A stretch of DNA of 33,000 nt from Octopus sinensis (GCF_006345805.1 NW_021836291.1:93001-126000), one strand, 5' to 3'; counted from the stretch's first letter, positions 3,602 through 32,219 are shown. Program-made: numbers and translations. The notes: generated by a model from the letters alone, not told the origin.

Positions 3602-4821
3602 TCAGACAAGACCAGCCTTCTGGAGATATGACTGAGTGATGATATTAACAACGTCGTGGAAGACCACCACCATATTATTAGTGTCAGTAGCACACACATA
3701 GTGAATATACACTTGCTCTGAACGGGTATTCACACTGTCCAAATATTTGTTTTTAATGAACTCGCGCACAACTTCCGGGTTGTCGTCCGCCCCTGCCAGT
3801 TCACCAACCTCACTACCCTCAAATTCAGGAAAAATGGCCCTGATGGACTGCCTTTTCACTTTCTCCACAAAAATATCGTATTTGTTGAGAAACAGAATCA
3901 TTGACGTCTTTTTGAAATATTCGTTGTTGAAAATAGACTTGAACAGGTGGAGACTCTCCTCCATTCGGTTCTACACATGACCAGTCCTCACCCACCACAG
4001 AACTGTCCTCCATCAAAGTCAGGTCGTACTCCGCTATGGACGCCACAAACAGAACTGCCGACACGTCCTCAAAACAGTGAATCCATTTCTTCCTCTCCGA
4101 CCTCTGTCCTCCCACGTCCAGCACCCTGCCAGTCACCCAACTCCCTCACTGAAAGGAAATGTTGTTAAACACAAATTTAATGTCCGTCAGTCCTGTGGTC
4201 TTCACCCGAGTCCTCAAAACGTGCTCGACTGTCGGAATGTAGTCCTCCTTGCAGATTTGATCCAAATTGTTGAAATAACTGGGAATTGGGGAAAGGAGGG
4301 ACTACTATTCGGCTGAGTCGTTCAATTGGAACTCATTTGAGCGGGAAACACAAATCCGGACTCCCTGGTCATTCCAGAGGAGGGAGACGAGGGGGCCAAC
4401 CACAGCAAAGTCGGGGTTGTTTTGATCGAGGACGGAGGTGAGGAAGTCTTTGGCCACGGAGGAGTTTTGGGGGTCACAAAATTGGATTTGGAGTTCGGAC
4501 ATGGCTCGGAGGACTGCGACCATGCTTTGGATTATGTTGGAGTGGACTATTTTCTTGTGGGTGAGACATTCTGACTGTGAATAGCCTTCCAAATGGATAA
4601 GTCTATAATTATTCAGGAACTAATTAATATTCAACCTGATTTGCTTAAGAATTGTGCTTTTTCCAGATTCTCCAGGACCTAGTGGATGACTGGAGGGGGA
4701 TACCGAGAAGGAGCATTTTGAATAATTTGGTCTCCTCTTTATTTATGTTTTTTAGGTTTTTCTCAGCTTCCTTTCTTCTTTTTAGTGCGATTCGTACATC
4801 AGCACTGTGCACACAACCCAT
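3602..4821 (-). CDS. Heterotrimeric G protein alpha subunit, divergent Gi/o-like (353 aa, 7 exons)
   Basis: Introns at 4679-4703, 4603-4635, 4279-4305, 4126-4149, 3971-3995 and 3793-3816 (25, 33, 27, 24, 25, 24 nt) leave 1062 nt in frame. Motifs: MGC start, [45 protein letters not shown], ending QKAGLV*. Confidence 0.95.
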
Positions 4822-5211
4822 CAGGATGCTTTAAATTGGCGCTACAATATTTTATTAAATATTTTAATTTATTAAATATGCAACTAATTAATTTAATTCA
4901 TATTTATTATTCATCAGAATACTTTTAGAAGAATTGTGTCTCATATTTTATTTGAGACTACCAAAGTAGCCTTTATCGAATTTCCTATCATTTTTCACAG
5001 ATAAATGAGTCAGTCAATAGAAAGAGTATAGCAGAGGATGGGTCGCAGTGAGGTCTGTTTAGTATCTGATAGGTCAATAAGAGTAGATTATGCCAACACA
5101 AGAACCCTCTCATATACCCTTAATAGTCCTTTAAAAGCCAATTCCCCACTCAGTTTATAAAAGTCCATCGAAAACACAAAAAAGCCAAAAATTAAATAAG
5201 GAACAAGTCAG

Positions 5212-6253
5212 TTAAGAACGATCGTGATTTGCTTTGGGTGATGCATTATCCCGCCTATTCTTCTGTTCCACATTAATGCGGTGTCCTTCCAGTGCATGAC
5301 TCTACACATAACTCACCCCCTCACCCTCTGCGACAACACCCTTCCCACCACTTCCTCATTATCAAACGTCACAAAACCAAATTGCTAAACATAGACACAC
5401 CCCTCACCCTCGACGCCGGTCGTTGCTTACTCCTCGACACCCTCACGTCCGTCACATTCCCAAAGTCTGCCTAATCCACTAACAATCTACTAGAAAAGTA
5501 GTCCTTCAAGTCCCCCTCCTTCACGTTCTCAGGCAGGTTCCCCACAAATAACTGCCGCCGGTCTTCCTCCGCTGATCTCCGACGGTCGGCTGAACTACGG
5601 CGGCCTCCCCCAAATCCCTTCTGTCGCTGATCCTGACTTGAATCATTCTCAGGCCTCTATAAAAGAGCGGGAAATACTGGGAAGAGCGGGAAAACGCCGT
5701 CACGTGTTTTGGGAGGATTCCTTGGACAGGTGAACTCAGTCCAGGGGGATTGCTGTCGGGTCCCCACGCCTTCTTTTCCGGTGGACGAGCCACCCTTCTG
5801 GGAGGTTCTGCCTGGGGGGTGTCCACCACAGAGGGGACTGAGTCGGTAGATGAAAGGAAAGTGGCTGCTTTGATCTTATACCGACTGTTGAGGACAAAAT
5901 TGTGGACAAAGGTCGGGAGGTTGTTCCCTTTGGAGTCCACCCCCTGTCCATAGACTGATATATTTATCATTGCGTCCATTGGGAGGGCAGAATACTCGAT
6001 TATGTGGAATTTTAGTCCGGAATATTCGCGGGTTAATAAATATTTTAGAATGTTCTGGAAGGATTAGAATTTTCTATACATCACATCCTGCGGTGTAGAA
6101 ATCTGCGTCTGCGTCGAACTGCTGAGAGTCAGATTGATAGAAACTAGAAGTCTGCACTGAGTTGGGATACCTAGACAGCTTGGACTGATCCTTTCCTAAA
6201 AATCCGTAATATAAACGGATAAATTTGAAAGCGTCTTGTCGCAGGTCACACAT
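5212..6253 (-). CDS. G3BP: G3BP/Rasputin-like protein (NTF2 + RRM), about 290 aa, no RGG tail
   Basis: Six introns (6144-6170, 6055-6079, 5657-5703, 5467-5490, 5385-5407, 5302-5324) leave 873 nt. The N-terminus is NTF2-like (FIRLYYGFL...LSSFY...TFVHNFVL). The RRM reads QLFVGNLP...FSNFGNV...QFGFVTF...RINVEQK. Confidence 0.85.
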
Positions 6254-6511
6254 TAAACAGATAACGTGGTGTTTGCTATTTATTATATAAATTGAATTAA
6301 AAAAAATTAAGAGATATATACTAATTAAAATAAATTAATTCCGTTTTTATTATATCCTATTGACTTTAGATTGAATTTGTGACTTTTTAAAATTTTAACT
6401 TTACCAATATAATCCTATTTCTATAACATAACTAACATTTTTATATATATTAACAATATTTATATTAACAATAAAATTATAATAAATATTTAATAAAAAA
6501 GTGACACTCGT
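6254..6511. promoter_or_regulatory. Probable bidirectional promoter between head-to-head G3BP and SRP19
   Basis: 258-bp, extremely AT-rich spacer between two divergent start codons. Function is inferred from position only. Confidence 0.45.
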
Positions 6512-6990
6512 ATGTTCGAAAGAGGGTATGTGGTGCATATATAGTAGTAGATGGGTAGTAGTATATCCCTCATATATCAATAAAAACAGGACTGTCCAGC
6601 AAGGCAGGCGAGTCTCTAAGGAAACAGTAGTCCTTTTGCTTATTGTAGGCAGTGGATAACCCTACTGCGGCTGAGCTACACAACGTCCTGGTTTCATTGA
6701 ACGTTCCTTCCCAGTTTGAGGTACTTTGGATTTGTTTTTTTAGCCAAACAAAATATATCCCAGAGAATTGGATATTTACGATAAGTTTTCTCGGGGACGA
6801 GTGAAGGTTCAGATCAGTGATTTGAATGGAAATCCTCTCAACCAGGAGATCCCGTCGAGTGAGTGTAGTTTGTTATTTCTTAGAGCTTTCTTTGTTGCAT
6901 TTTTTGTGTCGCCACGTCACTCCTTTCAGGGAACGAATACAGTCTGCAAATTTAAAAGAAAAGTCTAAAAAAAATAAAAAACGATATTAA
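6512..6990 (+). CDS. SRP19: Signal recognition particle 19 kDa protein (127 aa, 5 exons)
   Basis: Introns of 25, 22, 23 and 25 nt give MFERGWVVVYPSYINKNRTVQQGRRVSKETAVDNPT...NKIYPRE...RGRVKVQI...KKNKKRY*, carrying the diagnostic YP.Y, GRR, AV.NPT and GRV.VQ motifs. Confidence 0.95.
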
Positions 6991-7517
6991 TTATTTAATA
7001 AATATTTTTTGATAGAAAATGATTAGGAAAAATGAATTTTATTGCACTCCAAATTCTAATAAGAGTGCATCTCTGAGAATTATAAATTAAATAAATCTAT
7101 TTTAGCTATTAGTTGATGATGTTATTCCGAATAAATGACGAGTATGATCCATTTAAGCCTACTCGACATAACTATAGTAATTAATGACCGATTTGTTTGA
7201 TTTTTTAAACAGTTTCTTATGATTAAAATAAATATTTAAGACGTGGTTTTGGCCGATAAGTAGAATTTTAGTTTTTTCTATATTTAAGAGGATGGTTTAA
7301 ATTTTAGTTACGATTTATGAGTATAGATTTAAACTGGTAGAAATATTTTTAACTATTATTTATTTTTTTTACCGGAAAATCTGTCCATCGTTGGCTTTCT
7401 CATTTTAACGTCTCATATTTGTGTGGAAATTTAAATAAAAAATGAATTTCAAGTGAAATAAATGTAAAATTGATCGATCTGTTCAAATATTTTTTTTTGA
7501 GAAACCATTTCCTAGTA

Positions 7518-8646: not shown

Positions 8647-10660
8647 ATGAAAATGTTTGACAGAATGTATGAAATATCCTCCCATATTTCTAGACTCAGA
8701 AAATCCTGGGAATTAGATGGCCAGCATTTCAGATCGCAGGGAAGTGTCACTAATCGTCCAACAGTGAAGGTATATTCCAATCATTCAGTTTAGAAAACTT
8801 TGAGGCGCTTCAGTGTTTATAGAAAAAATGTTTCATCCACCGGGACATACCAAGTAGTCCCCACTTTGCCCACCTTAGGGGACCTCCGTGTATTACAGGA
8901 CGATTAGAATCATGGAAAACTCGCGGAAAATACTCGATAAAGAACTAAAAGATGTATTTGCACGTTTTAGATTGGTGATAGTTAAAAAACGTTTCAAATG
9001 TGAATTTATGTAATTTTATTGGGGCAATAATCACGGGTGACACTTACACTCTTCTTTTTGAGTTTTGTCCAAAAGGAAAACTGCAGAACCTCATTCTTGA
9101 CGAAGAATTTAATCTCGATTGGGTCCTTAAGAAATGTTTTATATTTGACATCATCGAGGTGGGACATCCCTGGATCACTTTAGGGGTTGAAATATCTCCA
9201 CGACAGTCCAATTGGATACCACGGTAATCTGAAAAGTTCGAATTGTTTAATTGATTCTCGCTACACGGTCAAACTGATGGATTTTTCTCCAAAAGTATCA
9301 CAAAGTAATACTCAACGATCATGCTACAACTACGACTCATTCGAATGTAAGTTGTAACGTGAACAGAGCATTAGCAGGATTAACGAGTCCCCCAGAACTG
9401 CTAAAATTCAACAAAAGAGCGTCTTTGGACATGAAAAAATGTGATATCTACAGCTTTGGGATCATCTGTCAAGAAGTGATATGTCGAACAACACCTTTTC
9501 ATTACAAAGAACTAAAACTAAACCCACTGGGTACACAATGTGGCTAATAAACTCAGAAATAATCGACAATGTGACCACGCAAGACATGAGACCGGATCTT
9601 TTACAATTTTGGGATTCGAATTGTCCCCAAATTTTCAAAAAGTTCATCAATCACATGTGGGGGACCAATCCGGCCAGTCGACCTCCAATAAATTTCATTT
9701 CCGAGGAATTTATGTTATTTAATAAAATGACCTATTTTAGAATTATGATCGGGAAATGCGAAGTTGGATCAGTCGTTGACACCCTCATGACACGACTGTC
9801 CACCTACGCCTCCCAGTTGGAAGAAATGGTAGAAGAACGGACCCGGGACCTCAAAATTGAGAAGGCCAGATCAGACGAACTCCTGGCTCTCTCAGAAGAC
9901 CTTCTCTACCAAATGCTTCCCCCGTAAGACTATTTTAGACACCCGCGAATAGACAAGTCGCACAAGACCTCAGATGTGGAAAATCAGTGAAGGCTCAAAA
10001 ATTCGACTCGGTCACAATCTATTTCAGCGACATTGTGGGATTCACGTCGATCTGCTCAAGTTTGGAATCCATTCAAATAGTTGAACTCTTAAATGAACTT
10101 TACTCACAAATGGACACAATTATTGCTGATTACAATGTTTATAAGGTCACTCTATTTGATCACTGACAGGTCGAGACCATCGGGGACGCCTACATGCTGG
10201 TCTCCGGTCTCATGCTCAACTCAGACCACGCCAAGGAAATCGCCCTCACGGCACTCCACCTCCTAAAATCCGTGACATCCGTCGCGGTCCCAACCACCGG
10301 GGCACCCCTCAATATTCGAATTGGAGTCCATTCTGGTTGTTTTGTTGTTTTATTTAGGCCCCATTTGTGCCGGCGTTGTGGGAATCAAAATGCCGCGGTA
10401 CTGTTTATTTGGGGACACAGTCAACATGGCATCGCGGATGGAATCCACCGGGAAACGTATTTTGTTGTGAAATGTTCTTTTTAGCTCAAATGATTCACAT
10501 TAGTCAGAAAACGAAGGAATTGTTGGACCCTTTGGGGACTTTTGAGATTGTTTCACGTGGAATTATCGACATTAAAGTATTCCATTTGTGTGGGCAAATG
10601 TAGGGGAAGGAAAGTGCAGAGACATTTTGGCTTCAGGGAAATAAAGAGAAAAATAATTAA
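8647..10660 (+). CDS. Receptor-type guanylyl cyclase (kinase-homology domain, signalling helix, catalytic domain); 5' end unresolved
   Basis: After splicing about 13 micro-introns: [103 protein letters not shown]. The GTP-specifying Glu and Cys are present. The start coordinate is the first in-frame ATG I could connect. Confidence 0.9.
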
Positions 10661-10725: not shown

Positions 10726-11715
<990 letters not shown>

Positions 11716-11772
11716 TGGCGACTATTGGTTTATTAATTCTACTTAAATATTAACTAAAGTGAAGTATATCAA

Positions 11773-12861
11773 TTAAGTGGGTATATTACACTGAATACAG
11801 TCAATAGCACGGCCTACACGTTCTTTAATGAAGTGAGGACATTTCCAGACTGAAGGGGACATGACCAATAACTGTTCGAGGACCCCCCCACACCCAACCT
11901 CGGTCAACATTTGCTTAATATGACACCAAAGAGAGGCGTCCAGTTTAAGCAAGACCAACATAAATCTCTGCAACACTCTGAATGACCTGGAAGGGAACAA
12001 CAACACAGCCATTTGGACAGCCCCCTCACTCCCAGTGGACAGTGCAGCACTCACCACCTCCAAACAAGCCGAGGACACAACCTTGGGAGGCAGCATTGTC
12101 AAAAAATAAGTGGAGACTACCCCCAACATGGCCTTCACGACCTGCCCGTCCAAATTGGTGGGTTTCATCAACATTTGTATCTCCAAATCGAGGACATGAC
12201 TCAACTGAGAGTGAGTGCAGTCCACTCCACCAATCAGTCCGTACCCCCACTTGATGTCCTCGATGGGATCCACATAGAATATATTGTCCACTAGGTCATG
12301 TCCGTCGACCTCCTCCTCCACTCGATCCAGTCCTTCATTGAGGACATCTCTAAGACTGCCAATGACTGATTTCCTCACTATTCCAAACACACATCCTCGT
12401 AGACGTGCTCGATCTGCCGGGGAGTCAGAATGACCGAATTGGGGACAAGACTTGCCACATTCTGAGAGGGGTCTGCTGTCCCCAATCTGACTTAACCACC
12501 AAGGGGGACCTGTACAAGTCGGATCCTCCGTTGAACTTGTCCAACGAGGTTTTTATGGAGACGATGATTCCGCACTGACGGAAGCACTCCAATAACTTGA
12601 CTAGTTTAGACCTGGGATGAGCATATGGCACAACCGAGGCACTCGGTGTCTGTAGAAACGGGATTCGTTGAGCATGTAGTCTCGGAGGCAGTCCACTGCC
12701 TGCTCACCCCGAAAGCATTTTTCGTATCTTTTGATAAAACAGCGGTGGGCTTTGATTTCCAGGTTTTTGTGGAGTCCGCATATTAGGTCGAGCCACTGTG
12801 GATTATATGGGTGTCTCACCATTTCGGTTACTCTGTACATGTTCGAGTTGGGTATTTCCAT
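11773..12861 (-). CDS. Compact DEPDC1/DEPDC7-like protein (DEP domain + degenerate RhoGAP-like region)
   Basis: MYRVTEM|WLDL...AHRCFIKRYEKCFRGEQAVDCL matches the DEPDC1-type DEP domain. AVQMAVLLFPSRSFRVLQRFM resembles the LLLP...R..LQ.L motif. Introns are 21-24 nt. Confidence 0.75.
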
Positions 12862-13012: not shown

Positions 13013-13762
13013 ATGAGATTAAACAAATTATTGACTGGCATACGTGTTGGATACTCTCCTCTCCGACGAAAGTCTCCCCTTCAAGTGGCAATTCAAAAAA
13101 TATTTATAAAAAATGGATACCGCAGTGAGTCAGTGGACCAATTCTTATCAGCAACCCCCCCAAATATATCCCCTCATTTACATAAACTGGAAATACTGCT
13201 CAGTCTTAACGTGCCTATCCACCACATTATCAACTCGGCCGACTTAGCCCACCTCGACATTGGCAAATTCGTGTGCCTATTCCAGTCCCTCAGGAGAATT
13301 GGACTCCTCTCCCACCAGTCAGCCGCCTGTGTTTTCCACTCCTCCCAAGTTGTGACATGGCATAGTCTCACCCCACTACAAATTATTTCCAAATTTAATT
13401 GTTTATTGTCCTACTTTCCTGCCAAAATGGCAAGGAGGGCAATGGCTGCCCATTTTTGTGAAATAATGGAGCTCAGTGAGGACTGCCTGAGTAGGAAAGT
13501 GGAGTATTTGCTGGACATGGGGTACTCCGATCGGGATATCCTCAGTTCGGGGTCCTTGGGGTACCATTTAGACTTCATTCAGCTGCGGTTGTCATTACTG
13601 CACAAATGTGGAGTCCATTCCATCCCCCGCCCTAACCAGCCTAATTTCCGGGACAACAAATCACTCAAGTCAGTCCTCAGTGCCTCTTCCACCCAGTTGG
13701 CTCAAATGGCGGGGATATCTCTGGAGGAGTTGTGTGTGTTTACTGATTATTATTATGACTGA
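13013..13762 (+). CDS. MTERF4: Mitochondrial transcription termination factor family, MTERF4-like
   Basis: About 250-aa ORF. The C-terminus KVEYLLDMG...LGYHLDFIQLRLSLLHKCG...P...SLKSVLSAS...LAQMAGISLEELCVF follows the MTERF4 C-terminal pattern. Confidence 0.7.
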   Translation: MRLNKLLTGIRVGYSPLRRKSPLQVAIQKIFIKNGYRSESVDQFLSATPPNISPHLHKLEILLSLNVPIHHIINSADLAHLDIGKFVCLFQSLRRIGLLSHQSAACVFHSSQVVTWHSLTPLQIISKFNCLLSYFPAKMARRAMAAHFCEIMELSEDCLSRKVEYLLDMGYSDRDILSSGSLGYHLDFIQLRLSLLHKCGVHSIPRPNQPNFRDNKSLKSVLSASSTQLAQMAGISLEELCVFTDYYYD

Positions 13763-13787
13763 TTTAAATATTATTGCCTAGCAGTGT

Positions 13788-14150
13788 ATGAAAAGTGTTC
13801 CTTCTGTGTTGTCGGATACGAGTTTAAACTACTTGGCCAAGAAGATAGAAGGGGCTGGTCTGACCTTGGGGATGTACCTCAATATCCCTACCACGACCAT
13901 AGTCAATATGAAGATCGACAATGATCTCCGTGGAGGGTCAGATGGGGATCTCACTGCTCGCCTTATTCTGTACTGGAAGAGAGCTAAAGAGAATGCAAAG
14001 AATGGAGATAAGTTGCTCATGTTAGAGAGGGCGTTGAAGGATAGTGGAAGGGCTGATATTAGTGAGATCTTTACTAATTGCTATCAAAACAATGTGGAAA
14101 TTGTCCCCGAGTCATTTGCTAACCTCAAGTCTAGGACTCCTCCTGAGTGA
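13788..14150 (+). CDS. Stand-alone death-domain protein (or terminal exon of an MTERF4 read-through)
   Basis: LSDTSLNYLAKKI...LGMYLNI...IVNMKID...LILYWKR...LERALKDSGRADISEIF shows the six-helix death-domain spacing (W; AL...R.DI). It begins 25 nt after the MTERF4 stop. Confidence 0.75.
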   Translation: MKSVPSVLSDTSLNYLAKKIEGAGLTLGMYLNIPTTTIVNMKIDNDLRGGSDGDLTARLILYWKRAKENAKNGDKLLMLERALKDSGRADISEIFTNCYQNNVEIVPESFANLKSRTPPE

Positions 14151-14382: not shown

Positions 14383-15500
<1,118 letters not shown>

Positions 15501-15890
15501 TCAAAGTGTACTTGATAAAAACTGCTAAATTCTTTTATTAGTGCAAAAATAGGTTTATCAGGAAATATTTATGAGGCAATGCCAATAGTATACAGCAGTG
15601 TGAGCTGTGGGACTGCAAACACACCGAATAGTAGGAAGGTTTATTATTTAACGTAAGCAGAATTATTTATAGATGCGATCAATAATGAATCGATTGCATT
15701 CGTTTAAGGACAACCCGATTGGACAGCGTTCTGTTATCCAATATTTATGTTGAGGTGATTAGAAATTACATTTTTTGATATTTTTACATATTATATTCGA
15801 ATAATTGTAACAGGTGTACTACGTGGGATGATTCATCGCTTATTTGTTCTCCATTCAAATATGATTGACCTATCCAAATACACTAATGAT

Positions 15891-18577: not shown

Positions 18578-19817
18578 ATGGAAACAGATCAAAAGGTAAA
18601 ATATAACTGAAAATACTAATTTTGTAGCACATTGTCAACGTGAAAATGTTGTTTCTCAAAATCGGGGAAATTAATACCATCAGGGAACAGTTCACTGCAG
18701 ATGTGCTCATCGAAACCAGTTGGAGTGAGCCTAAACTTTCTGTCGACGACATTAATGTATTGGTCGCAGAAATGTCGTAGAGTGAATTTGATTTGAGCAA
18801 ACAGTGGGATCCTGCCATCCACATCGAGAACATCTTGGTGGAGCAAAAGGACTCGGGGTGGATAGCAGCCACTTGTGTTGTCGACAATATAGTGTATATA
18901 ATCAAGAAACGAAGAGTTCGGGGCATATTTATGGAGAAACTGGAATTAGAAAACTTTCCATTCGACGTCCAAGTAACATTGAGGGTCTGAAAAGTATTAG
19001 GACCTGACAGTCAAGTTGATCAGCCACCACGACGCGAACCAACTTGAATTTCGAACCAAAGAAATGGAGAATGGAGTAAACATCAATTCCTTTGTGGATA
19101 AGCAAGTTTGAGCGCACTCAAAACAACTCAGAAATGGAAACTTTATAAGCATTTTGAGGTCGAAATAAGAAACGATGACACAAACATTTTATCAAAGTCA
19201 AAACACCCTTCCATTTCCTACATGTGCCAAGTAGAGAGGAGATCCGGGTTTTTTTATTGGAACGTATTTTTAATAATGGTTGCCATTCTAAAGTAACGAA
19301 ACCAGTGGGGGATTGCCACTTTGTCGTTTACCACGTTTGCTGTGAACAATCTCAGCACCCACAAACGACTCCAGCTGACCTTCACTCTCATTTTAACGAC
19401 TGTAGCCTTTAAATTTGTGGTCAATCAAAGTCTGCCAAAAATATCCTACCTGACATATGCCGTTCGATCACATTTATGGACTGTAGGACAAATATATACT
19501 TTTTTCATTATCTCTTTTGGGAATTATATGCACGTGGCACAGTATAGTCCCGTCTCTCGTGGTCTCCGCTGGATTTACAAAAGAACATTACGTAATCGTC
19601 GGTCTTTTGATGGTATATATATTCTACCATATATACTTTGTTCTTGTTATTTATATAAGGGTATTATTTAATATTTGACGAATTAAGGCATTCTATAAAC
19701 GAAGGATTGTTCAGAAAAAAGAACAAAGGGTCGATTTAATTTGTTATTTTATAGTTTGAAGAGAAATTAATCTGGATTGAAAACAGCTCGAAGAAAACAA
19801 GTATATATATTTCTTGA
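18578..19817 (+). CDS. Cys-less (Pro-loop) pentameric ligand-gated ion channel subunit, 341 aa
   Basis: Eight introns (32, 24, 28, 26, 27, 25, 27, 25 nt) leave 1026 nt. Motifs: LFLKIGEINT..EQFTADV...W.EP, WDP.IHIEN, LELENFPFDVQ (no Cys pair), four TM helices, LPKISYLT in the M2-M3 loop and a short M3-M4 loop. Confidence 0.9.
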
Positions 19818-20074: not shown

Positions 20075-23000
20075 CTATAAATTTAAATATTGCTCCAATT
20101 TATCAATTTTTTCAAGAATGTTTACCCCACATGCTTCAGAAAAAAAACTACAAAGTTCATTGGAGCTTCCGTCGCCCTCTTGAATAAAAGCTTCAAGAAA
20201 CAGATGGAAATTGAATTTAAACGAATCATTTCCAGAAGACAATTTACTCATGATTCTCGATACTATTCTCTGAATTATCGACAACAAAGAGTCCTCGTTA
20301 TGTGCACCAGTAATAAAATCAAGAACAGTCTGCACCAAATTTGCAAACCCTGTCTAAAATGACTTATTCTTAAAACTTGATTTAAAGAGGGAAGTTGAGA
20401 AATGTCGACGGATTGGGCACCCTGTAGAAATGAATGAAACCAGTTGTATGGTGTAAAAAGAACATTCGAGTTTTCTTCCTCGTTTATTGGGCATATGACT
20501 GTGTATATAAATTAAACGAGTTTTACGGTTCGAATCTATTGTCTGGCATAGAAACAAGACAAGAAAAAGCTGTTTTCCATTTCCGGAATAAAAAACGTTC
20601 ATAATTAAAGCAAAATCTTTAAATGAAATGTAATTTTCATTGCTCATCAACTAAAATTAAGTATACGAGTAAAAATATATCACAAATACAATAAAAAGGT
20701 GATCTGGCAGTCTTCCGAGGTTTGAGAAGGGGGACAATCCTCTGAACAACTCGACAAATTGTTTATGGCCAATACGATAATAATTTTCAGGTTCTTTTAA
20801 TTCCGAAATCAATTCTTGTCTAACCATTCCAGGTTGTACTTGAATGAAATAAAACTGTCATTAAAATGCCACAAATAAACCTTAAAAACATGAAAAAGAC
20901 TCACAATTTTTGCAGAACTGAATATTGTGATTTTCTCGACAGCCTGGCAGATCCTCTCGATAACATTTTCATGTTGTTTCTGATTATAATCTCAAATATA
21001 GTGAATACGAGGAGAAGCTTTAGCCGACACTTGACTCTTAGTTTGTTGACCTCTTTATCAGTCAGTTCAGAAAACGAATTTCTCGCCATTGAAATTAGAC
21101 TTTTGAATGACTATGCACAATTAGTTAAAAAACTGACATTATTTTTGAGGGAAATCGATCTTATATAATTATTCAAAATGCACAAAGCTTCTGGAAAAGT
21201 GGTCACTTTTACTAAATCTGCCGAACAATGTTTAAAAATGGCCAAGGAGAGTCTGAAAAGTACCTAAACACGTGTGAATACGACTATACAATTGAGCCTT
21301 CGACTAATACACGGTCAATCACCTGAGCTGCACACTCAAAGTGCATGGCGTGAGAGAACAAAGTCAAAAACCAAGAAACGGTGATTCCCGACAAAGTTTC
21401 CTCAACGGAATTAAGGAAAGGGGACAAATTTGGAATGTATTTTTCCAACAGCAGTTTTAAAACGTCTAAATATATATTTTCACCAACCACAGTCAGTTCG
21501 AACTCCCATGACATTGTTGGAGTAGTAATTGGCCAGATACTGTTCGGCGATCTGAGTGAGCACCCAAAAAGCCAGTTCTTCGTTACAATGCAACAACAAA
21601 ATGCATGAAATCATATTCATAGCTTGGCAGTATCCAATTTCTTTATTTCGCCACGCATAGGCCATCAGAACCCTTCTTAGAGCCTCTTGTCCTCGTGGGG
21701 TCCGGAAGACTGGGTGTTCTGGGAGTGATCGGTGAAGGTCTTTGGCTATATCGTCTTTTATGGACACAGAAATGGTCTCAGACTGGTCTACAGCATGATG
21801 GTAGTATCCAGGGTTTATATCGCACTGTCAATAAGTAGCAGGGACTACCAAATAACGGGCACCGGAATATACTCCCCAGAGCAATTCACGGACAGATCCG
21901 GGAATCCCGTCATCCAGAAGTTTGAGGGTTCTATTAGTTCGGTACATGCAGGGATCACTGAAAGATGTTGTTTTTATGATAACCTTCTGATTCCAAGAAG
22001 ATGGATCTTCCAATTCCATTCAAGGTAAGAATCCAAAATGGCATTGTCTTGAGACCCCAACGAAGGTTCCGTTTCTTCTGTAAATTTAAAAATGTACTCA
22101 ATTGGCAATTTGTGTCCAAATTTTGAATTAAATTTTTAGAATTTTCTAACAATTCACCAATTTTTGCCCAACAAAAAGTGTTCTCTCCTATTGCAGTAAA
22201 ATCAAAATGTTTCTAGGAGTGAATCACAGCTCTCTACATCAATGTCGATATTCAAAGTCAGATTTCCTTGATAGTTCAGAAAATATGTGATCAGACTCAT
22301 AGGTATGACTATTGACACCAAACCACTTTCCTTTTTATATAAACTAATTTATTTTCACTTTGCTATCAAAGGCGATATATTTCTGACCGACGTAGATAAG
22401 TCCGTCAATGTAATCCTCCAAGAACGGGACAAACATTAAACAGGTCGTCCAACTGATCGGCATTTCTGAGAATGGAAACATGAATCGTCGTCTTGTTCAT
22501 AAAACTCGACAATACAACCTGAAAGAATCCTTTACTTTGCAAGCAATTCCATCACTGCCCGAATAAAGACAAGAATGGAGACTAATGTGAGTTTAGAGGA
22601 CCCAAACTTTAGGAATTCCGTATCTTCCAGCACACTAAAATCTCCAGGCAAGTTCATTCTAATAATAATAACAAAAACAAACTGGTTTATAACACGACAA
22701 CACAACTGTTCCACAGCTTCCTCGAAATTTGCCATTGACTTATATGAGAAAAATGTGTACTAAAAATTAACCTCCCTCAGTACCTCACGGTCCTGAAACG
22801 TCCGCAAAACTAGTCCTGAAGACAGTACGGGATAATTTACAGTTTTTATTTGCTGTCGGGTTATTAAAGATACAAATACTTTTACATGATGCCACTTTAT
22901 GGTCACTTGTCGTCTAGCTCCGATTGTGGTCTGAAAATGGAGTTGACTGGGAGACAAATCAGTGATCCCAGTCAACAAGAAAGATCCAGACCAGCACATG

Positions 23001-23501
23001 CCACCAAATTCTCTCACTGGAGAAGGGCGGCAAACGGATGAAGGTAAATAAGACATGATTTTGTCATCTTGGGCAATATTACACGTTGGTTGTAATTGTA
23101 TTTTCAGATCAGACTCCATGAATAAATTAAGGAAGCTATTCAAAGTGCTGAGAGTTGATTCGTCAGTCGGTTCCGAGTCTCCGTTGCCTAAATAATGTGA
23201 AACCAATAGAAAGACTGAATGTTAACGTTGGGATGACTGTGGTTTCCAAAAAACTCCATTTTTTCCGCATTTGTTCGAAGGAGCCGATCGCAATGACTTG
23301 AAGTACATTATAACATTATACCATACACTTTAGGGGAACTCTCGAGGGCCAATACGATCCGGTATTTCCTTTTTATGATAAAATTTGTCGAATGTTGAAA
23401 TTCAAAAAACTGTGTTTTCCTGTCATAATTCCTATAATTAATTATTTATGAAACAACCAGTTTTTATCAGCGCGGGGTGCTTCGACCAGTCGAACCCACA
23501 T
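20075..23501 (-). CDS. TBC1D9: TBC1D9/TBC1D8-like Rab GAP (GRAM region, TBC domain, EF-hand-like C-terminus)
   Basis: The start MWVRLVEAPRADKNW is followed by YRIVL...VIAIGS...KWSFLE, which matches the family N-terminus. IAKDLHRSLPEHP (Arg finger) and IGYCQAMN (Gln finger) are present. The C-terminus reads FNFHLFLEAF. Internal exons were not all traced. Confidence 0.85.
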
Positions 23502-23947: not shown

Positions 23948-25559
23948 TTAATGAGCAAGCGAGTCAATCAAGCATTTTAAATATTTTTCTAAATAAATTG
24001 ACAATAAATACTTGATTTTTGTCTGAATTTTAGAAAAGAACACCTGGTCGTCGGGGAATATCCAAAAATTGTTAGATTTCTCACAGACCTGTAAATAAAA
24101 TATATTATAAACTGACCTGCTTTTGTACAGTCAAATTTAATTTTAAATGTCTGGTTTCAAGTTTTATGTTTAAATAAATTTGAGTTTGATCGATCACGTT
24201 CAAATTCATCAAGGAATTTATAAAAATATTAATTTTCCGAATTGGTGGCGCATGGACATGTTCAGAGTCATCCCAAAACCATTTCAACTTTTTTTTCTCG
24301 TGGTGAAATGCCTGATAACCTCCAGATTCATTAATCAACAGTCTGAAGGAACATGACTAAACTGACTTTATGGCCAAGTCTGGGTCATTGACCACTAACC
24401 CAGCCGTAGAATTGTACACGGAAACTAAGCTGTTTTCGAGGTCGTCTTGAAAGATTTGAACAATCACAGTTTTGCCACATTCAAACGAAATTACAGCTTT
24501 CCGTCCAGATTTATAGCTTTTTATTTTTAGTACAAAATACAATATTGAGAAATCCTGGACTGAAAACGATTCGATCATTTTCTGCCCAGTTTTATAATAT
24601 TCGACGTCGTATTTAATGGTTTTCTTAAATAAAAAATATTTTTACTCTCTCTGACTTGAGACCAACATCTCTCACGTTTTGGCCAACTTTACTCAGATTG
24701 AAACTAATTTTTTCCACTGCCTCAATTTTTTGGAAATTACCTGGTTCGATAGTGATGGAAGACAGAGACTTTTTTTCGATATTTTGGACTGGAATTTTTG
24801 TCGGTTCTTGGACTTGGTGATGAAATTTATAAAGTTTTTCTGATAATTCAAGCAACAAAAAATCTCTTCTTGAGACCTTGTCATTATTTCCATCAACGAA
24901 GGGGTCACTGGCAGTTTTTGGTTGCAGTAACTGCAAAATATTGCGTCTGGGAAAATTTATGAGGCAATACCGTTCCTGAACGTTTCAAACATTTTTTTAA
25001 GTTCTTCAATTTTGACATTGATCTAAATTAGGTAAAAGACACTCTTACGTTATTTTTTTGAAGGAAGTTCAATTTTTTGGCTAAATTTGAGCTACGATAA
25101 TCCAACCCTCATTCTCCCTGGCCAACTGAATTTTTAAATTGTCCTCCAATCGAGTGTAGTAACCATCTTCGTCAGATATCTAAAATACACAAATATTTAC
25201 ATACAAAGCTATCTTCTTTGTAGATAGACACCCCATATGTGTCGTCTAGTCGGAATCCAGTGGGGATGGGCAGGTGCTTGTGATATCCAAAGATTTCTCC
25301 TTCGATAAAAATCGCCTGTGGATTAGCATAAGCCAATGAAAACGTCTTTGGGGACTTTTTTGGCACTTTCTGGGGATTTTAAATCGGTATTTTTATCAGA
25401 ATTGTTTATTTTGATTTCTTCCTCCTCCGTTTGAGTGCTCGTAGAAATCACATTTTTATTTTTGCAAAAACTTTTTTCCACGTAAAATAATTCTTTTTCT
25501 GAAATGGAATTATTTTGTTCATTCGTTTCATTAGCTTGGTCAGTAGACAACATTTCCAT
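23948..25559 (-). CDS. ERICH6: ERICH6/FAM194-like protein
   Basis: Acidic N-terminus with STQTE, then CSYC...FCCLNY, YKSGRKAV...IVQIFQDD, INESGG...KWFWDDSEHVHAPPI and a terminal KIQTKIKYLL helix, consistent with the FAM194 layout. The match is from memory. Confidence 0.65.
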
Positions 25560-25634
25560 GCCAATTAATTATTTGTTGATTCAAACAAAGCTATTAGTGA
25601 TAAAAAACTAGCAATATAAACAAAAAACAGAGTA

Positions 25635-27911
25635 TTAATGTTGGGCGACTGCAATACAACTTCCCAGGAGAACGGGGATCCTCTTCCCTCGTCCCCACCC
25701 CAGTCCACATCGTTTCCTTCTGAGGGGAAACATGACATTTTTTAGTTGCATCAACACCCAACATTTCTGAACCCACCTCCAACATGAATAGACCTTGTCT
25801 GAGACGATCGAAACCTCCATCAAAGGCCCACTCAGACACACTGGTCCTTGGTCCCTCACATTCTCCATCATCTGCTTCCACTCAAGAAAACCAAGTCCCA
25901 GTAACCCTCGAACCTCCTCATCAACCACGACCACCTCCAAACTGCCACTCTCATCCTCCACAGTCATACTAAGCTAGAGACACACCACAAACCACAACTC
26001 AACAATAAACTGAGTAGGGAAAGGACACCCCTTTTCTCCGTAAAATTTACTTGCCCCCCTTCCACAGCACAAACATTTGACGGACATGGTGAGTAAATTA
26101 AGCACAGACAATCTCACTTTCACATCCCACTGACAATCACTCTCTTTGGATATGTTTTTGAGCTTTGTTCGACAAGTGACAAATCGTTTTTCGTGATTTA
26201 ACACAGGAAGCGACACTAACTCAAAATATGACATTTGGTCAAAGTGAACTCCACCCAAATCAACTGACAGATTTCTAAAAATGCCGACTGACCCCTCCGG
26301 CAAGTCAACATCAGGGGTTAAGACGTCCACAATTTTTTCAAAAAAAGAGTTATCCAAAGAACATAAAATAACTTGCAGCGAATTTGGCTAAATGCCTCGA
26401 TAAATACAACCAATTGACGGACACGACTTATCACAGCAACGAAGCATTCGAGTCGACTACAATCCTCACTTTACACCAATCAAAACCGTGGAGATTTGCA
26501 AAAATCAACGTCTTTAATGTCCACCGTCATGTTTTCTCCGTTATTCCGTGAATAAAATATTCTGGAAATTTCCATCAAAGTGTCGTTGAATGCTATCAAT
26601 CTGACAGTCAAAAAGTAAAAAAAACCTTGGATTTTGAGGTCCACAAACACAGGGACAATGCCAAACCAACTCATATATTCCACCCACATAGAGAAACGGA
26701 AAACATCGACAGGCAGAACCAGAAAAAATCAAGCCAAGACGATTTCTGAAATCACAAAAATCACGTAAACGACAATTTTGACAAAGGTCATATTGGCGAG
26801 AAATAAGTTTCGTTTTTGCAGTAAAGAATATCCCCCTCCTTGCCTGGTGAGGGGACTGAGTTGTCTTACTACAAAGGACAGTCTGACTCGACACTCATAT
26901 CGTCCCACGAATTTGTCCAAAAATGTCAACTTGGACAAAATAAGCGCACAAGTCAAAGAAAAAGCAATTTTTTGTACATTTTTGTAGTCTGCCTTCATAG
27001 AAAGTACACCAAAGTCAACTACAGCCACCAATGACCCCACATCACACGACTGGAATCGAGGACACGTTCGATAGCAACCAAGAACAGCTAAACTGACACT
27101 CCAAACATACAAAACAAGCATTTAGGAGTACAGGAGTGCAAATCAGTGCCAATCTGCCCTATTTGACACTCCACCGAGCCAGTCTGGTCAGTCATATTGA
27201 CCTTCCCTTCAGCAGAGGTGGTCAGACACCCCACAAGCACCACATTCTATCAAAACAAGGTCATTCCCAACCTCCGAAGCAATGATGGTAGATATATCGA
27301 CAATATCAGGCATACAACACCCAATTTGTCCCACCATCTGATTACTAACACAAATACCAGCGAATTCTGCCCACACGGACACAGGGGAGAACTCTTTCTG
27401 GGATCAACTCTCACATTGTCGACCATCCGATTATAAAGTGGGGACTTTAAGAACACTTTTTCTAAGGAAAGGACGTCCTTTGTATAAAAAGACATTCTTA
27501 CGATGCTTGGGGCAAATTTATGGGAGAGTCTGCTGTTTAGGTAGAGGTATAAAATCAGCTTTCTCAGTTCTGGCTCCTGGGCGGAGAGGGGAAAGGGATG
27601 GCTGGAGGCGGGAAATATATCAGCACTGAGAGGACTTATTTTGGTGTGAGAACACAGGAAGTAGACCCACGTGTCTAACTATTTTATTTGATGTGATTTA
27701 GTTACTGGTTTTATATGAGCTTTGTGGAAATGTTCAAGTTCGATGTATCCCTTTAGGAGAGGGAGTCCCAGGCCTGTGAAGAGCCTAGTGAAGGTATAGG
27801 ATGGCTAGCAGAACCATTCCTCGTTGAAACGGTGTATCCCCCACTCTGGAGATAGGCAATAGAGAATATGACCCTACTTGGTAAACGCGGGAATTGAACT
27901 TGAATTCTCAT
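25635..27911 (-). CDS. CTC1: CST complex subunit CTC1, shortened
   Basis: The order of motifs follows CTC1: LYLYL...HKFAPS, VVLVGCLTTSAEGKVNMTDQTGSVEC, AIER, LIFSGSACRCFPFLYVGGIYEL, C..C zinc ribbon, VEDESGSLEV...LLGL...EW. The start codon is inferred. Confidence 0.75.
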
Positions 27912-28290
27912 TCTAGGACATACAAGAGAATAAATTTAACATTTTTGATAAAACAATATTTTAATTTATATTTCAACAATTATTAATTAACTAAATTTAA
28001 ATAACCAAAATATTTATTTTCTTTAAAAACTAACGCTCCTTACACTTTGTTTATTTGACGATAACACATATGCCAAATAAATTAAACTCCTTGTTGCTCT
28101 TTTTTGCAATATTAATTTAATAATAAATAAATTAAGATTAAAAAATATTTCTTGATGGCAAACCTAATAATTAAATTCATAACACTTCGTTTTTGCTGCA
28201 TTTAGCCATTTAATGTTGTCATATATGGTTCTGGTTGAGTAAAAATATTGGCGAATAAATATTTTATATTAACAATATATCAATATATTT

Positions 28291-29687
28291 TCACTCCATA
28301 ATTAATTTTGCCATCCTATTCTTCAAAGCACCGCGTAAAAGACTCCTAAGAAAGACAGTTTTGTCAATGTCGCATTTTTCTTCAAAAATCCTGTATTTCA
28401 CGCTCACAAGAATTCGATAAATCTCGAAATCATCAACAGAAAATTACTTTTTTGAAGTTTTGTATCATCAAAGTCGTGATTTCACAGAGATCCTTCGTAT
28501 TTTGAATGTCCTGCAGATCCAGGCTCTGACAGGAATGTAGATCAAAGAGTAATGGCGCAAATACAACTCCCAGTGCTTTCCCTGTCATTTTATTCGTCTA
28601 TTTATATATATAAATTATACTTTCGAATAACCAGACACATGCCATAAATGTCCAAGTACAAATAATAGCAAAGAACGGGAAAATATTTCAAATTTAGCCA
28701 CCTTTGTTGTAATGTGGAGCACAATTGTGTCTGTACTCCTCATAGTCCTGTAGACCTTGAGAACCTCCCCAGATATCCCTAAGATATCCATCAAATAGGC
28801 CAATACCACTCAGTCCCATGTGGGTGGAGAAACTGCGAAGAATAAATTTGAAGAGACATGCCACCAAGACGGGGTCATTCCACAGTAAAGGGTCAAAACT
28901 CCACTCTAAGGGATCCTAAAATGTGGAGAGAAGGACAACTTTGTTGAACATGGCTGTCATTTTGAGGACATTCTGATGACATGTGGATAGTCTATAGATC
29001 CCCTCCACATGGATTGCGTATTTGTCCACATAGGAGGTGAGGAGGTAGAGAATGAAGGGAATGTGCTTAGAGTGAATTAATGGGGCTTACTGGCTGTTTT
29101 GGGGTCTCCATAAAATCATTTTTGTCGAATATAAACTCGTTAGTTTTGACTGTTTTTGTATTTTTAAATATTTTTGAAATTGGTTCGACTATTTTAGTCA
29201 AAATAAAAAAATACAAAAAGACGGAGATTTAAAACAAAACAGATTGTTGACTATTTTCCTAACGTTTTCATACTTTCTCAGACTCCTACACCGTTAATGC
29301 CAATTTCACTTTGTTTTCTGACTTTCATTCACCTTTTTCTCACTTTGTTGATCAAAATGACGTGTTCCATTGGAGGGGAGACCTAATGATTTAAGTACTG
29401 TTCGATTGTATATATTGACATTGATTAGTATTAAATGTCATTCATTACATATGTTAATTACTTGTATGCTGTAGCACTCGATTATTAAGGTAGGACTTGT
29501 GAGGGACTTTTGAGTCGTAGTCAACCAGAATGCACTTGCTGAGGTGTTTTGCACACGAGACTCGAGGAAGTACTTTGAAGGCAGTCCTGTTATCCTCAGG
29601 AGTTGTTCCGAGTAGGGGTTTCTTGTGGACGTAGGTTGTTGTTGGTTTGAGGGTACATTTAGTGGGCATTTGGTCAGACAAATCCAT
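28291..29687 (-). CDS. RhoGAP-domain protein with a low-complexity N-terminus
   Basis: The spliced product has HIPFILYLL...VEGIYRLS (Arg finger), LVACLFKFILR and LLLFVLGHLWHV...NKMTGKALGVVFAPLL. Introns are 21-31 nt plus one of 79 nt (29383-29461). Confidence 0.85.
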
Positions 29688-32175: not shown

Positions 32176-32219
32176 AATTGGGCATAAAAAGATCACTTTA
32201 TTTAATTCAACATTATCTA

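Follow-up and report, generated by a model that had tools for sequence, protein, structure and literature searches.

The window, that is, the whole stretch of 33,000 nucleotides analysed here, looks like gene-dense, dicyemid-like DNA, and it raises the question of why G and C should trade places inside its genes. The earlier note had described, from hand counts on the + strand, genes that are C-rich on their left and G-rich on their right. All eight hand counts were reproduced exactly, with binomial p-values for the segments of 2.5e-6 to 0.03. Our skew analysis was confined to this one window and to 14 genes, for which we built splice-aware models of our own; these are imperfect, with Pfam support for 10 of the 14 (in one of them, the DEP-domain gene, only below the curated cut-off), and only 4 lie on the + strand.

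A skew switch inside genes

On the + strand, the C-rich left part and G-rich right part were present in 8-9 of the 14 modelled genes. Read along the sense strand of these responders, a label given post hoc once the data had been inspected, C exceeds G over the initial ~0.4-0.6 kb, after which G exceeds C and T exceeds A. Five or six of the 14 genes, including the housekeeping gene SRP19, show no such pattern. When G/C labels were permuted in 150-bp bins with the GC landscape held fixed, the mean z^2 was 1.00 (permutation maximum, 1.42), compared with 2.30 in the window, and bins with |z|>3 numbered 11 against 0.5 expected. At the gene level, an a-priori half split of silent sites gave the predicted direction in 11 of 14 genes (Wilcoxon p=0.003), and within-gene permutation of silent sites in the 14 genes gave a combined p=2e-12. 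The effect grows with GC3 (rho 0.59, p=0.03). In eight genes, the overall sense skew amounts to -0.2 to -0.3 in the 5' domain and to +0.14 to +0.42 in the 3' 450 nt. These results confirmed that the G/C skew switch inside genes is real. The genes and their fitted switches are as follows:

3602..4821, - strand: G-alpha gene (Gi/o-type), Pfam G-alpha 1.2e-100 over 294 aa, spanning the switch; sense G-rich 3' domain 3602-4228 and C-rich 5' domain 4229-4821; step fit at 4221-4235, + strand skew -0.26 then +0.21; C-rich bias extending to ~5093 in the upstream spacer, with the reset at 5093
5212..6253, - strand: G3BP-like gene with C-terminal RRM (RRM_1 8e-15); switch 5665, step fit of + strand skew -0.42 then +0.17
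6486..6968, + strand: SRP19 (SRP19 6.9e-17); non-responder, no flip, G-rich over its full length, silent delta -0.14
8882..10644, + strand: receptor-type guanylate cyclase with kinase-homology and catalytic domains (Guanylate_cyc 6.8e-34); switch 10318, 326 nt before the stop, step fit -0.08 then +0.28, reset 10756
10908..11700, - strand: CFAP119/CLAMP (Pfam CLAMP 8.9e-32); switch 11213, step fit -0.44 then +0.24; silent delta 0.80, p=0.0002
11773..12861, - strand: DEP-domain gene (DEPDC1 in the earlier note), weak DEP match of 5e-4, below the curated cut-off, 259-codon open frame; switch 12399, step fit -0.23 then +0.09; silent delta 0.28, p=0.015
13013..14150, + strand: unnamed two-exon ORF, its open frames 254 and 122 codons long; switch 13429 by step fit, cumulative minimum at ~13693, step fit -0.32 then +0.13; silent delta 0.39, p=0.004
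14383..15560 (5' end approximate), - strand: cAMP-dependent protein kinase (PKA) catalytic subunit-like gene (Pkinase 1.4e-42); weak switch 14991, step fit -0.17 then +0.07; silent delta 0.25, p=0.06
18628..19678, + strand: Cys-loop ligand-gated channel (Neur_chan_LBD 9.5e-8); non-responder with a slightly inverse trend, silent delta -0.13
20075..23271, - strand: TBC/RabGAP gene (TBC1D9 in the earlier note; RabGAP-TBC 3.2e-39); largely neutral apart from a weak C-then-G unit in its 5' ~1.2 kb; switch 23019, step fit -0.06 then +0.19 with a small likelihood gain; silent delta 0.08, not significant
23948..25565, - strand: FAM194/ERICH6-like gene (FAM194 1.4e-19); AT-rich non-responder, silent delta 0.11, not significant
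25635..27911, - strand: long unnamed ORF, here ORF25635, with open frames chained via 11 short introns; switch 27429, 482 nt from the ATG, step fit -0.26 then +0.27, reset 27805
28291..29228, - strand: RhoGAP gene (RhoGAP 1.9e-11); switch 28820, step fit -0.22 then +0.27; silent delta 0.46, p=0.0008
29454-29687: possible exon or ORF upstream of the RhoGAP gene, sense C-rich too

Pfam searches returned no match for the two unnamed ORFs, leaving the names proposed earlier for them (MTERF4 with a death domain for 13013..14150, CTC1 for ORF25635) without Pfam support. The step fits agree with the trend previously seen by eye in CFAP119, the DEP-domain gene, the PKA-like gene, the cyclase and the RhoGAP gene, with the PKA-like gene weak and the cyclase conforming only in its GC-rich last ~1 kb, and the genes said to fit poorly (SRP19, the channel, TBC1D9 and ERICH6) are the same as our non-responders. 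The ORF at 13013..14150 is the one + strand gene with the full pattern. The pattern is independent of gene orientation as described, but this has no evidential value for a DNA-level process, because an antisymmetric sense pattern looks identical on the + strand either way.

Silent sites and introns

From the 5' to the 3' part of genes, the GC skew moves from -0.33 to +0.29 at third codon positions and from -0.08 to +0.48 in introns, compared with 0.04 to 0.33 at first and -0.18 to 0.01 at second codon positions. The third-position AT skew is +0.02 in the 5' part versus -0.26 in the 3' part, so that the mirror image is incomplete. The flip was retained when four-fold codon families were stratified, both in all 14 genes (OR 1.55, p=0.0012) and in the responders (OR 2.3, p=4e-6), and two-fold families moved likewise, the share of C among pyrimidine-ending codons falling from 0.50 to 0.40 and that of G among purine-ending codons rising from 0.40 to 0.53. 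With the shift largest at third positions and in introns and kept within synonymous families, amino-acid content is therefore not its cause, as had been claimed; since silent codon positions and introns carry the flip, the force acts on DNA or RNA rather than on proteins. Compared with the non-responder genes, the 5' part has more C (+0.12) and less T (-0.07) at third positions, and the 3' part has more G (+0.15) and less A (-0.11) there; these base changes resemble AT-to-GC transitions.

The G-alpha gene illustrates this within a single conserved protein. At residues conserved with the Gi/o proteins of other animals, the C3:G3 ratio is 21:6 against 19:26 (p=0.004), and a polarised test of amino-acid replacements in the same protein detected no directional G/C shift (p=0.66). 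The introns quoted for this gene exist, four being validated by a Pfam G-alpha alignment that continues uninterrupted across them and the fifth (4679-4703) having been read by eye; G/C counts in the intron cores flip from G-rich (9/2, 10/2 and 11/2) to C-rich (1/12). Similar counts were obtained in the G3BP-like gene (10/0, 11/2 and 8/1 in 3' introns, 5/10 and 1/5 in 5' introns) and in the RhoGAP gene (1/7 and 1/7 in the 5' part, 5/3, 5/3 and 4/2 in the 3' part), and the conserved catalytic domain of the cyclase displays a visible flip in codon choice.

Shape and position of the switch

In the comparison of step and sigmoid fits, the switch proved to be a step and sharper than a transition spread over ~440 bp; the likelihood gain of the step over a 440-bp sigmoid was 23.9, versus 10.8 +/- 3.9 in simulations, with the AT component only partly mirrored at third positions. 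The C-to-G up-jumps lie in GC-rich DNA (mean GC 0.427) and the G-to-C resets in AT-rich DNA (mean GC 0.348). Neighbouring genes are only 70-400 bp apart, and the spacers between them are the most AT-rich DNA of the window. As the earlier note had stated, the skew resets there: at six junctions, the fitted resets fall in AT-rich spacers or within ~120 bp of gene ends, even where spacers span only 70-150 bp, and at tail-to-tail and tandem junctions alike. The resulting skew units are ~1-2.3 kb long. Support for the periodicity that the earlier note put at 1-2.5 kb is weak, with an autocorrelation of 0.17-0.18 at lags of 1.2-1.35 kb.

In 8 of 10 genes, the switch lies 408-593 nt from the 5' end, a distance unrelated to gene length (rho 0.03), while its distance to the 3' end grows with gene length (rho 0.66, p=0.04, n=10). 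The cyclase is the one exception to this 5' anchoring, with a switch 1.4 kb from its modelled 5' end. The anchoring rests on two long minus-strand genes, the weak TBC gene and ORF25635, whose switches are ~0.25-0.5 kb from the 5' end; in ORF25635, the sense G-rich domain then continues for 1.8 kb and reaches the stop. A switch that stays near the 5' end while only the 3' distance scales has a polarity that points to the transcription unit, and it weakens the earlier proposal of a strand-symmetric process acting on gene-sized DNA units. No shared motif was found at the switch points and no gene-scale inverted repeat in the window, and the spacers within it contain no shared tandem or inverted repeat and no telomeric or junction repeat.

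Known systems and possible causes

Several known asymmetries resemble this pattern in part. As here, mammalian transcription-associated strand asymmetry produces a sense keto (G+T) excess at neutral sites that is limited to the transcribed region, and our 3' domains have the same sign; in the window, the asymmetry is present at neutral sites (third positions, introns and four-fold families) and is confined to the transcription unit, with resets within ~120 bp of gene ends at six junctions. However, sense G>C and T>A do not extend along the whole gene but are found in the 3' domains only (+0.29 GC, -0.26 AT, against -0.33 GC in the 5' part). Moreover, the amplitude is about ten-fold larger here (skew 0.3-0.5), the initial ~0.5 kb is opposite in sign and not merely neutral, and the change is a step seen in only some genes. 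In human genes, the ratio of non-template A-to-G over T-to-C is 1.5-1.7 in gene bodies but drops to ~1.1 where CpG islands are transcribed, and there the asymmetry is weaker or absent (PMC2817419); a distinct promoter-proximal regime is therefore already known. Plants and fungi have a sense C>G skew at the gene 5' end, as found here in 8 genes, in the form of a peak ~100-200 bp wide that is centred on the transcription start site and reported as not significant in animals (PMC555766). Unlike our genes, theirs have no strong G-rich domain after it (PMC555766), and in place of a narrow peak we found, measuring from predicted gene 5' ends, a domain that runs 408-593 nt into coding sequence, includes introns and ends in a step.

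At replication origins, in bacteria and in human skew domains and CpG islands (PMC2817419), one strand likewise turns abruptly from C- to G-rich within a GC-rich island; the accompanying turn from A- to T-rich is reproduced here only in part. They delimit units of tens of kb to Mb, compared with ~1 kb here, and the domains of the window are not unrelated to gene borders: their ~1-2.3 kb units reset at gene ends, with the switch in coding sequence at a near-fixed distance from the start. For spirotrich ciliate nanochromosomes, published work (PMC7858049 and studies cited there) describes gene-scale asymmetry with coding-strand G>C toward the 3' end, as in our genes, on separate telomere-capped molecules whose skew is subtelomeric and non-coding; in contrast, the window is a contiguous multi-gene segment with skew through coding sequence, and its spacers carry, as far as sequence can tell, no telomeric, tandem or inverted repeats that would mark the ends or junctions of gene-sized molecules. 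Finally, third-position C versus G preference in grass genes depends on how far the codon lies from the ATG and on GC3 class, as it does here, but with an amplitude of ~0.05-0.1 and, in the sections of that study considered (PMC2895627), no reported intron-matched step, as opposed to an abrupt sign flip of 0.3.

Composition in each responding gene falls into two parts that follow the transcription unit. The sense strand is C-rich over ~0.4-0.6 kb beginning near the start codon, turns G- and T-rich within ~200 bp or less and remains so up to the 3' end, with a reset at the AT-rich spacer. As the cause of this we tentatively favour, with a probability of roughly 0.4, a strand-asymmetric AT-to-GC transition bias that is anchored to the transcription unit and whose target strand flips past a promoter-proximal zone. 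Both the mutational, as opposed to selective, nature of the force and its coupling to transcription are inferences. Such a pressure, acting at the nucleotide level, would target sense-strand T in the promoter-proximal zone (A to G on the template strand) and sense-strand A in the elongation zone, where the pattern would correspond to the classical mammalian non-template-strand A-to-G asymmetry, ~ten times stronger here. The switch may mark the change from early to productive elongation, and the strength would vary among genes, presumably with germline expression, dragging GC3 and even amino-acid content along. We know of no established mechanism for a sign reversal within a transcription unit, and the cyclase, the five or six genes that lack the pattern and the absent directional G/C shift among G-alpha replacements also speak against this reading. 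Most genes of the window would have been shaped by a DNA- or RNA-level force in a manner that has no description for animals.

Selection on nucleic-acid behaviour instead of mutation appears unlikely, although it comes next in our ranking. A G-poor, C/A-rich 5' part would keep nascent RNA unstructured and disfavour promoter-near RNA:DNA hybrids, and a G-rich 3' part would favour hybrids or pausing and hence efficient termination between tight genes. Exons and introns are affected alike across the pre-mRNA, 5' domains fold more weakly than 3' domains (mean MFE -74.7 versus -97.8 kcal/mol per 350 nt), the spacers are very short, and the putative terminator signature of sense G>C at the 3' ends of closely spaced genes occurs in 8 genes; in 2013, Ginno and colleagues reportedly tied G-rich skew at the 3' ends of tightly packed human genes to R-loops and termination. 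Yet the G-rich part is not limited to a termination zone but takes up at least half of each gene body, and 1.8 kb in ORF25635, several equally tightly spaced genes lack the pattern, and the sense G>C of R-loop-prone animal promoters was not found just past the start, where the 5' domains have the opposite sign; moreover, sequence gives no means to tell selection from mutation. Replication origins, too, are marked by a sudden local rise in G+T skew, and we regard as slightly less probable still that each active gene holds an origin-like point from which replication, or local re-replication or amplification, proceeds outward, with a G+T-rich leading strand and forks meeting in spacers, as in the gene-sized replicons suggested earlier. 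The abruptness of the switch, its sign, shared with bacterial and human origin jumps (C to G, in part A to T), its position at local GC maxima, the 1.8 kb over which skew holds from switch to gene end in ORF25635, and the adjoining C/G pair in the TBC gene and the cyclase, in place of one arm per gene end, are all consistent with this, as are the somatic genome rearrangement and selective amplification reported in dicyemids (PMC6543705). Against it, ~1.2 kb units imply an origin density far above that known from any chromosome, inheritance is limited to events in the germline, the resets match gene ends, to which the termination of replication should be indifferent, the switch points share no motif, and the third-position AT skew is not fully mirrored (+0.02 vs -0.26). 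The suggestion of circles lost ground as well, as the published Dicyema circular contigs (~700 bp) hold only mitochondrial or non-coding sequence and no nuclear genes, and the window has no junction or telomere repeats.

Recombination or break repair from spacers is somewhat more doubtful again. Because the resected 3' strand differs on each side of a break, single-stranded DNA damage, or GC-biased heteroduplex repair that corrects G:T mismatches and spares A:C ones, could enrich C inward from each end; the sign so derived would fit (C+A-rich right of the break, G+T-rich left), GC enrichment and skew would be explained together, and no promoter would be needed at tail-to-tail spacers, where 3' G-richness also occurs. 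This reading predicts that long genes are neutral in the middle and, like the previously suggested resection or deamination and convergent transcription from spacers, that the bias fades gradually toward the centre, whereas a step was observed, with strong bias adjoining the switch in ORF25635 and the TBC gene and asymmetric arms. Furthermore, GC should peak beside the break but the spacers are the most AT-rich DNA, and with C at 40% of bases, a level to which plain C-to-T deamination cannot lift it, C-to-T loss cannot be the origin. Selection for 5'-3' pairing within one RNA, as a giant hairpin or end to end, is largely refuted and now very improbable: 5' parts do pair better with 3' parts (mean -28 kcal/mol) than with each other (-10) or than 3' parts do among themselves (-14), but energies are equal within a gene (-28.5) and between genes (-28.4), the rank of the same-gene pair among 8 varies from 1st to 8th, gene-scale inverted repeats are absent from the window, and long genes have very unequal arms. 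We give the least credence of all to an ordinary origin in protein composition or codon adaptation, or to errors in the gene models or chance. Amino-acid content does shift in 3' halves (W x2.9, E x1.6, V and G higher) and the gene models are imperfect, but silent sites and introns shift most, the shift is kept within codon families, the model-free all-site skew statistics lie far outside permutation, and Pfam domains continue uninterrupted over the switch points.

Gene models and extent of the skew flip

The analysis rests on one 33-kb window and 14 gene models of our own making, obtained with a self-written splice-aware dynamic program that used GT..AG introns of 17-60 nt, GC-adjusted codon scores and a trained intron model. 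This gene finder fuses adjacent tandem genes unless it is applied region by region; units cut by GC content alone were rejected, neighbouring genes being fused in them. Identity and strand are supported by Pfam in 10 genes.

Genes supported by Pfam (strand; Pfam E-value)
G-alpha, Gi/o-type, 3602-4821; -; 1e-100
SRP19; +; 6.9e-17
Guanylate cyclase, 8882-10644; +; 6.8e-34
Protein kinase A-like (PKA); -; 1.4e-42
Cys-loop channel; +; 9.5e-8
TBC/RabGAP, 20075-23271; -; 3.2e-39
RRM protein, called G3BP in the earlier note; -; 8e-15
CLAMP/CFAP119; -; 8.9e-32
FAM194/ERICH6; -; 1.4e-19
RhoGAP; -; 1.9e-11

The DEP gene showed a weak Pfam match, under the curated cut-off. Two further genes, 13013-14150 and 25635-27911, had been named MTERF4 with a death domain and CTC1, respectively, names that found no Pfam match even at E<=1; the product of 13013-14150 also had no match in a protein search. 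Both are clearly coding, as judged from their long open frames and short-intron chains, and their strand was assigned from the same features. Further candidates were also noted.

Further candidate genes (coordinates; strand; description)
16323-16809; +; possible small gene without the skew pattern, with a below-cutoff weak match to mitochondrial ribosomal protein L53 (E=0.0023)
16884-17909; -; long AT-rich ORF of 313 aa with introns, no Pfam match, no skew pattern
31742-32425; +; long AT-rich ORF of 227 codons, no Pfam match, no skew pattern

The latter two may be lineage-specific genes or decayed mobile-element ORFs. Region 1-3600 yielded no gene model backed by homology; further C-to-G skew flips occur there near 1950 and 2950.

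The skew flip, in which the C-rich 5' part of a gene's sense strand gives way to a G-rich 3' part, proved to be real. All eight hand counts on which it had been proposed were reproduced exactly, with binomial p values from 2.5e-6 to 0.03 each. When G/C labels were permuted over the fixed GC landscape with no gene model, the mean squared z of 150-bp bins was 1.00 (maximum 1.42) as opposed to an observed value of 2.30, and 11 bins exceeded |z|>3 where 0.5 were expected. The up-jumps from C to G have a GC-rich setting (GC 0.427), the down-jumps from G to C an AT-rich one (0.348). At the gene level, silent sites (third positions and introns) were compared between halves set a priori: the 3' half was more G-rich in 11/14 genes (Wilcoxon p=0.003), the combined within-gene permutation p over the 14 genes was 2e-12, and the size of the flip rose with GC3 (rho 0.59, p=0.03). 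Eight genes are clear responders (G-alpha, RRM protein, CFAP119, DEP, 13013-14150, PKA, 25635-27911 and RhoGAP, with PKA the weakest), a status given post hoc on data already viewed, so that the tests on the unselected 14 genes are the unbiased ones. The response is confined to the last ~1 kb in the cyclase and is weak in TBC. There is none in SRP19, the channel, ERICH6 or the AT-rich ORF 16884-17909, in agreement with the genes that the earlier note had listed as fitting poorly. Its statement that the pattern is independent of gene orientation carries no weight as evidence of mechanism: a plus-strand order of C on the left and G on the right is its own reverse complement, and a gene on either strand is therefore C-rich in 5' and G-rich in 3' as a mathematical consequence. 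Only four modelled genes lie on the plus strand, one showing the full pattern and the cyclase showing it late.

Silent sites and the shape of the switch

The flip is seen at third codon positions and in introns, and within codon families, confirming that amino-acid content is not its cause.

Skew, (G-C)/(G+C), in the 8 responders (first 450 nt; last 450 nt)
Third codon positions; -0.33; +0.29
Introns; -0.08; +0.48
First codon positions; 0.04; 0.33
Second codon positions; -0.18; 0.01

Stratified by four-fold family, the half-versus-half odds ratio for C- versus G-ending codons was 2.3 in responders (p=4e-6), 1.55 in all 14 unselected genes (p=0.0012) and 0.88, not significant, in the other six. 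Intron cores shifted from 97/77 to 79/153 C/G (p=1.4e-5). In G-alpha, third positions of residues conserved in 60 animal Gi/o proteins had C21:G6 before the switch, the point of change from C to G, and C19:G26 after it (p=0.004). Four introns inside this model are backed by an unbroken Pfam alignment; as had been proposed, they follow the skew, with G/C counts of 9/2, 10/2 and 11/2 in the 3' part versus 1/12 in the 5' part, and 130 nt separate the last G-rich from the first C-rich intron. Across the window, introns of responding genes match the domain around them in G/C content. Protein composition shifts too, 3' halves having 2.9 times as much W, 1.6 times as much E, and more V and G. A polarised test of replacements in G-alpha alone, made against the 60 animal Gi/o proteins, was negative, as G/C at first and second positions did not change directionally (-0.13 vs -0.01, p=0.66). 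That the flip is an artefact or a product of protein composition is barely credible.

Relative to third positions of non-responders (A.29, C.22, G.18, T.31), C is raised (+.12) and T lowered (-.07) in 5' parts, and G is raised (+.15) and A lowered (-.11) in 3' parts. Two-fold pyrimidine-ending codons move toward C in 5' halves only, and two-fold purine-ending codons toward G in 3' halves only. These changes are most simply described as an AT-to-GC transition pressure on sense-strand T early and on sense-strand A late, which explains why skew and GC enrichment occur jointly. Loss of C by deamination cannot be chiefly responsible, since C makes up as much as 40% of all bases where the bias is strongest.

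The switch is abrupt. All responders are fitted better by a step than by a linear gradient, and a sigmoid with free width shrinks to 0-12 bp. For nine genes taken together, the step exceeded a sigmoid of 100-bp scale (10-90% width ~440 bp) by 23.9 log-likelihood units; in 30 simulations from that sigmoid, the gain was 10.8 +/- 3.9 and at most 23.2. The switch therefore spans roughly 200 bp or less. No shared motif was seen at switch points. In 8/10 genes, 408-593 nt separate the switch from the 5' end of the coding region. This distance is unrelated to gene length (rho 0.03), unlike the distance to the stop, which grows with it (rho 0.66, p=0.04). Long genes are the informative ones here: the switch is 482 nt from the ATG in the 2.3-kb gene 25635-27911, and a weak switch is found at 252 nt in the 3.2-kb TBC gene. 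The cyclase, with its switch 326 nt from the stop, is a counter-case; anchoring at the 5' end is favoured but not established. Resets, the returns from G to C, fall at AT-rich spacers as had been claimed, within the spacer or no more than ~120 bp from it. They occur at tandem, head-to-head and tail-to-tail junctions alike, including spacers of only 70-150 bp.

Some details of gene arrangement were also observed. Four to five consecutive minus-strand genes occupy 20075-29687, and tandem minus-strand pairs lie ~70-105 bp apart (the ERICH6-like gene after 25635-27911, at 25565-25635; CFAP119 after DEP, at 11666-11773). Such closely packed genes may have polycistronic or overlapping transcription. 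An AT-rich 24-mer, ACAATATTTTATTAAATATTTTAA, is present at 4844-4867 and 27953-27976 in copies that are 83% identical, 23-42 bp upstream of the ATG of the minus-strand genes G-alpha and 25635-27911; it could be a core-promoter element or a chance likeness in AT-rich DNA.

Candidate mechanisms

We think that the flip is tied to the gene's own transcription unit, given the dominance of silent sites, the coincidence with gene boundaries, the independence from neighbour orientation and the roughly constant 5' arm. Our leading reading, to which we give a probability of about 40%, is a strand-asymmetric transition bias that is anchored to transcription and changes its target strand between the zones of early and productive elongation. 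We infer that this bias arises by mutation, depends on expression and is connected with the elongation transition. In the 3' domain, the sign is that of the classical asymmetry associated with transcription (non-template A>G), in a far stronger form; the 5' domain behaves as though it were the template strand that is vulnerable. In human gene bodies, the non-template A>G/T>C ratio is 1.5-1.7, vs ~1.1 in the transcribed part of CpG islands (PMC2817419); a separate promoter-proximal regime thus has precedent, but a reversal has none.

Among the alternatives, selection on the polarity of RNA:DNA hybrids or RNA structure is doubtful. An intragenic point resembling a replication origin would fit the abrupt up-jump in a GC-rich setting, yet neither the ~1.2-kb spacing nor the resets locked to gene ends agree with it, and the mirror expected in third-position AT skew is incomplete (+0.02 vs -0.26); this makes it unlikely. 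We hold it equally improbable that active dicyemid genes have a fixed internal point ~0.5 kb past the start, where the strand exposed to transition mutagenesis and the protected strand exchange places. The cause would then be a process physically starting at that point and running both ways, either replication initiated inside the gene (with germline replicons or amplification units on the scale of genes) or an internal start of divergent transcription, and gene bodies would be bidirectional DNA units rather than simple one-way transcription units.

Asymmetry spreading from the spacers, driven by breaks or recombination, is quite unlikely. The earlier note had offered resection with deamination, and convergent transcription from spacers; both predict a bias that fades toward mid-gene, and the step, the enrichment in C and the strong bias beside the switch, found in long genes, weigh against both. 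As to its model of circles or gene-sized molecules, the window contains no telomeric repeats and no shared spacer repeat; a Dicyema sp. assembly does hold thousands of ~700 bp circular contigs, but the conserved domains in them are mitochondrial only (PMC6543705). Selection for pairing between RNA ends is highly improbable. When 350 nt from each side of the switch were co-folded, the interaction energy was -28.5 kcal/mol within genes and -28.4 +/- 13.9 kcal/mol across genes, and the window has no gene-scale inverted repeats; the complementarity of 5' and 3' parts is only compositional.

Source of the DNA and comparison with known systems

The window is eukaryotic and gene-dense, with 36.6% GC and ~89 predicted spliceosomal introns, mostly of 22-30 nt (mode 24-26); no tRNA genes or Rfam family matches were found in it. 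The published Dicyema japonicum genome has 36.7% GC and very short introns (PMC6736024), and a 2026 survey found animal introns <30 bp only in D. japonicum and myxobolid myxozoans (PMC13644364). The cilium-associated proteins encoded here, CLAMP/CFAP119 and FAM194/ERICH6, would fit a ciliated dicyemid better than a myxozoan. A search with the G-alpha protein returned only relatives of <=51% identity, with no dicyemid entry among them, and two ORFs of the window, looked up by exact sequence, gave no record. Taken together, the window is consistent with a dicyemid.

In plants and fungi, an excess of C over G peaks over ~100-200 bp at start sites and is reported as not significant in animals (PMC555766); in grass genes, third-position C/G skews are only 0.05-0.1 (PMC2895627). 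In ciliate nanochromosomes, which are physically separate molecules, the coding strand is skewed in the 3' subtelomeric part (PMC7858049). Abrupt up-jumps also occur at replication origins and human CpG islands, but at much larger scales. No compared system joins a ~0.5-kb C-rich start, an abrupt sign reversal inside the CDS, a remainder rich in G/T and resets at every gene end, and we found the flip mentioned neither in the two dicyemid genome papers nor in the 2026 paper on ultra-short introns.

If present genome-wide, this would be the strongest and sharpest within-gene strand asymmetry known to us in an animal, and the first to reverse sign at a roughly fixed distance from the gene start. 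It would allow a transition within the transcription unit to be read from the sequence, whether from early to productive elongation, at a boundary of repair or hybrid formation, or at an initiation point, and would reveal a neutral-site force able to reshape codon use and amino-acid content along proteins. This is relevant to gene prediction, codon models and the phylogenetic placement of dicyemids, since a compositional drive of this kind may account for part of their long branches. The effects of dicyemid chromatin and DNA rearrangements on genes also become testable with existing assemblies and RNA-seq.

Lastly, a small DNA transposon remnant, AT-rich and without a skew domain, was identified at 7516-8138. 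Its internal ORF (7739-7987, +) has no Pfam match. The element is bounded by 29-nt terminal inverted repeats at 7516-7544 and 8110-8138, which are 90% complementary, and carries subterminal 16-17-nt repeats starting TCTCGAATCCGC.
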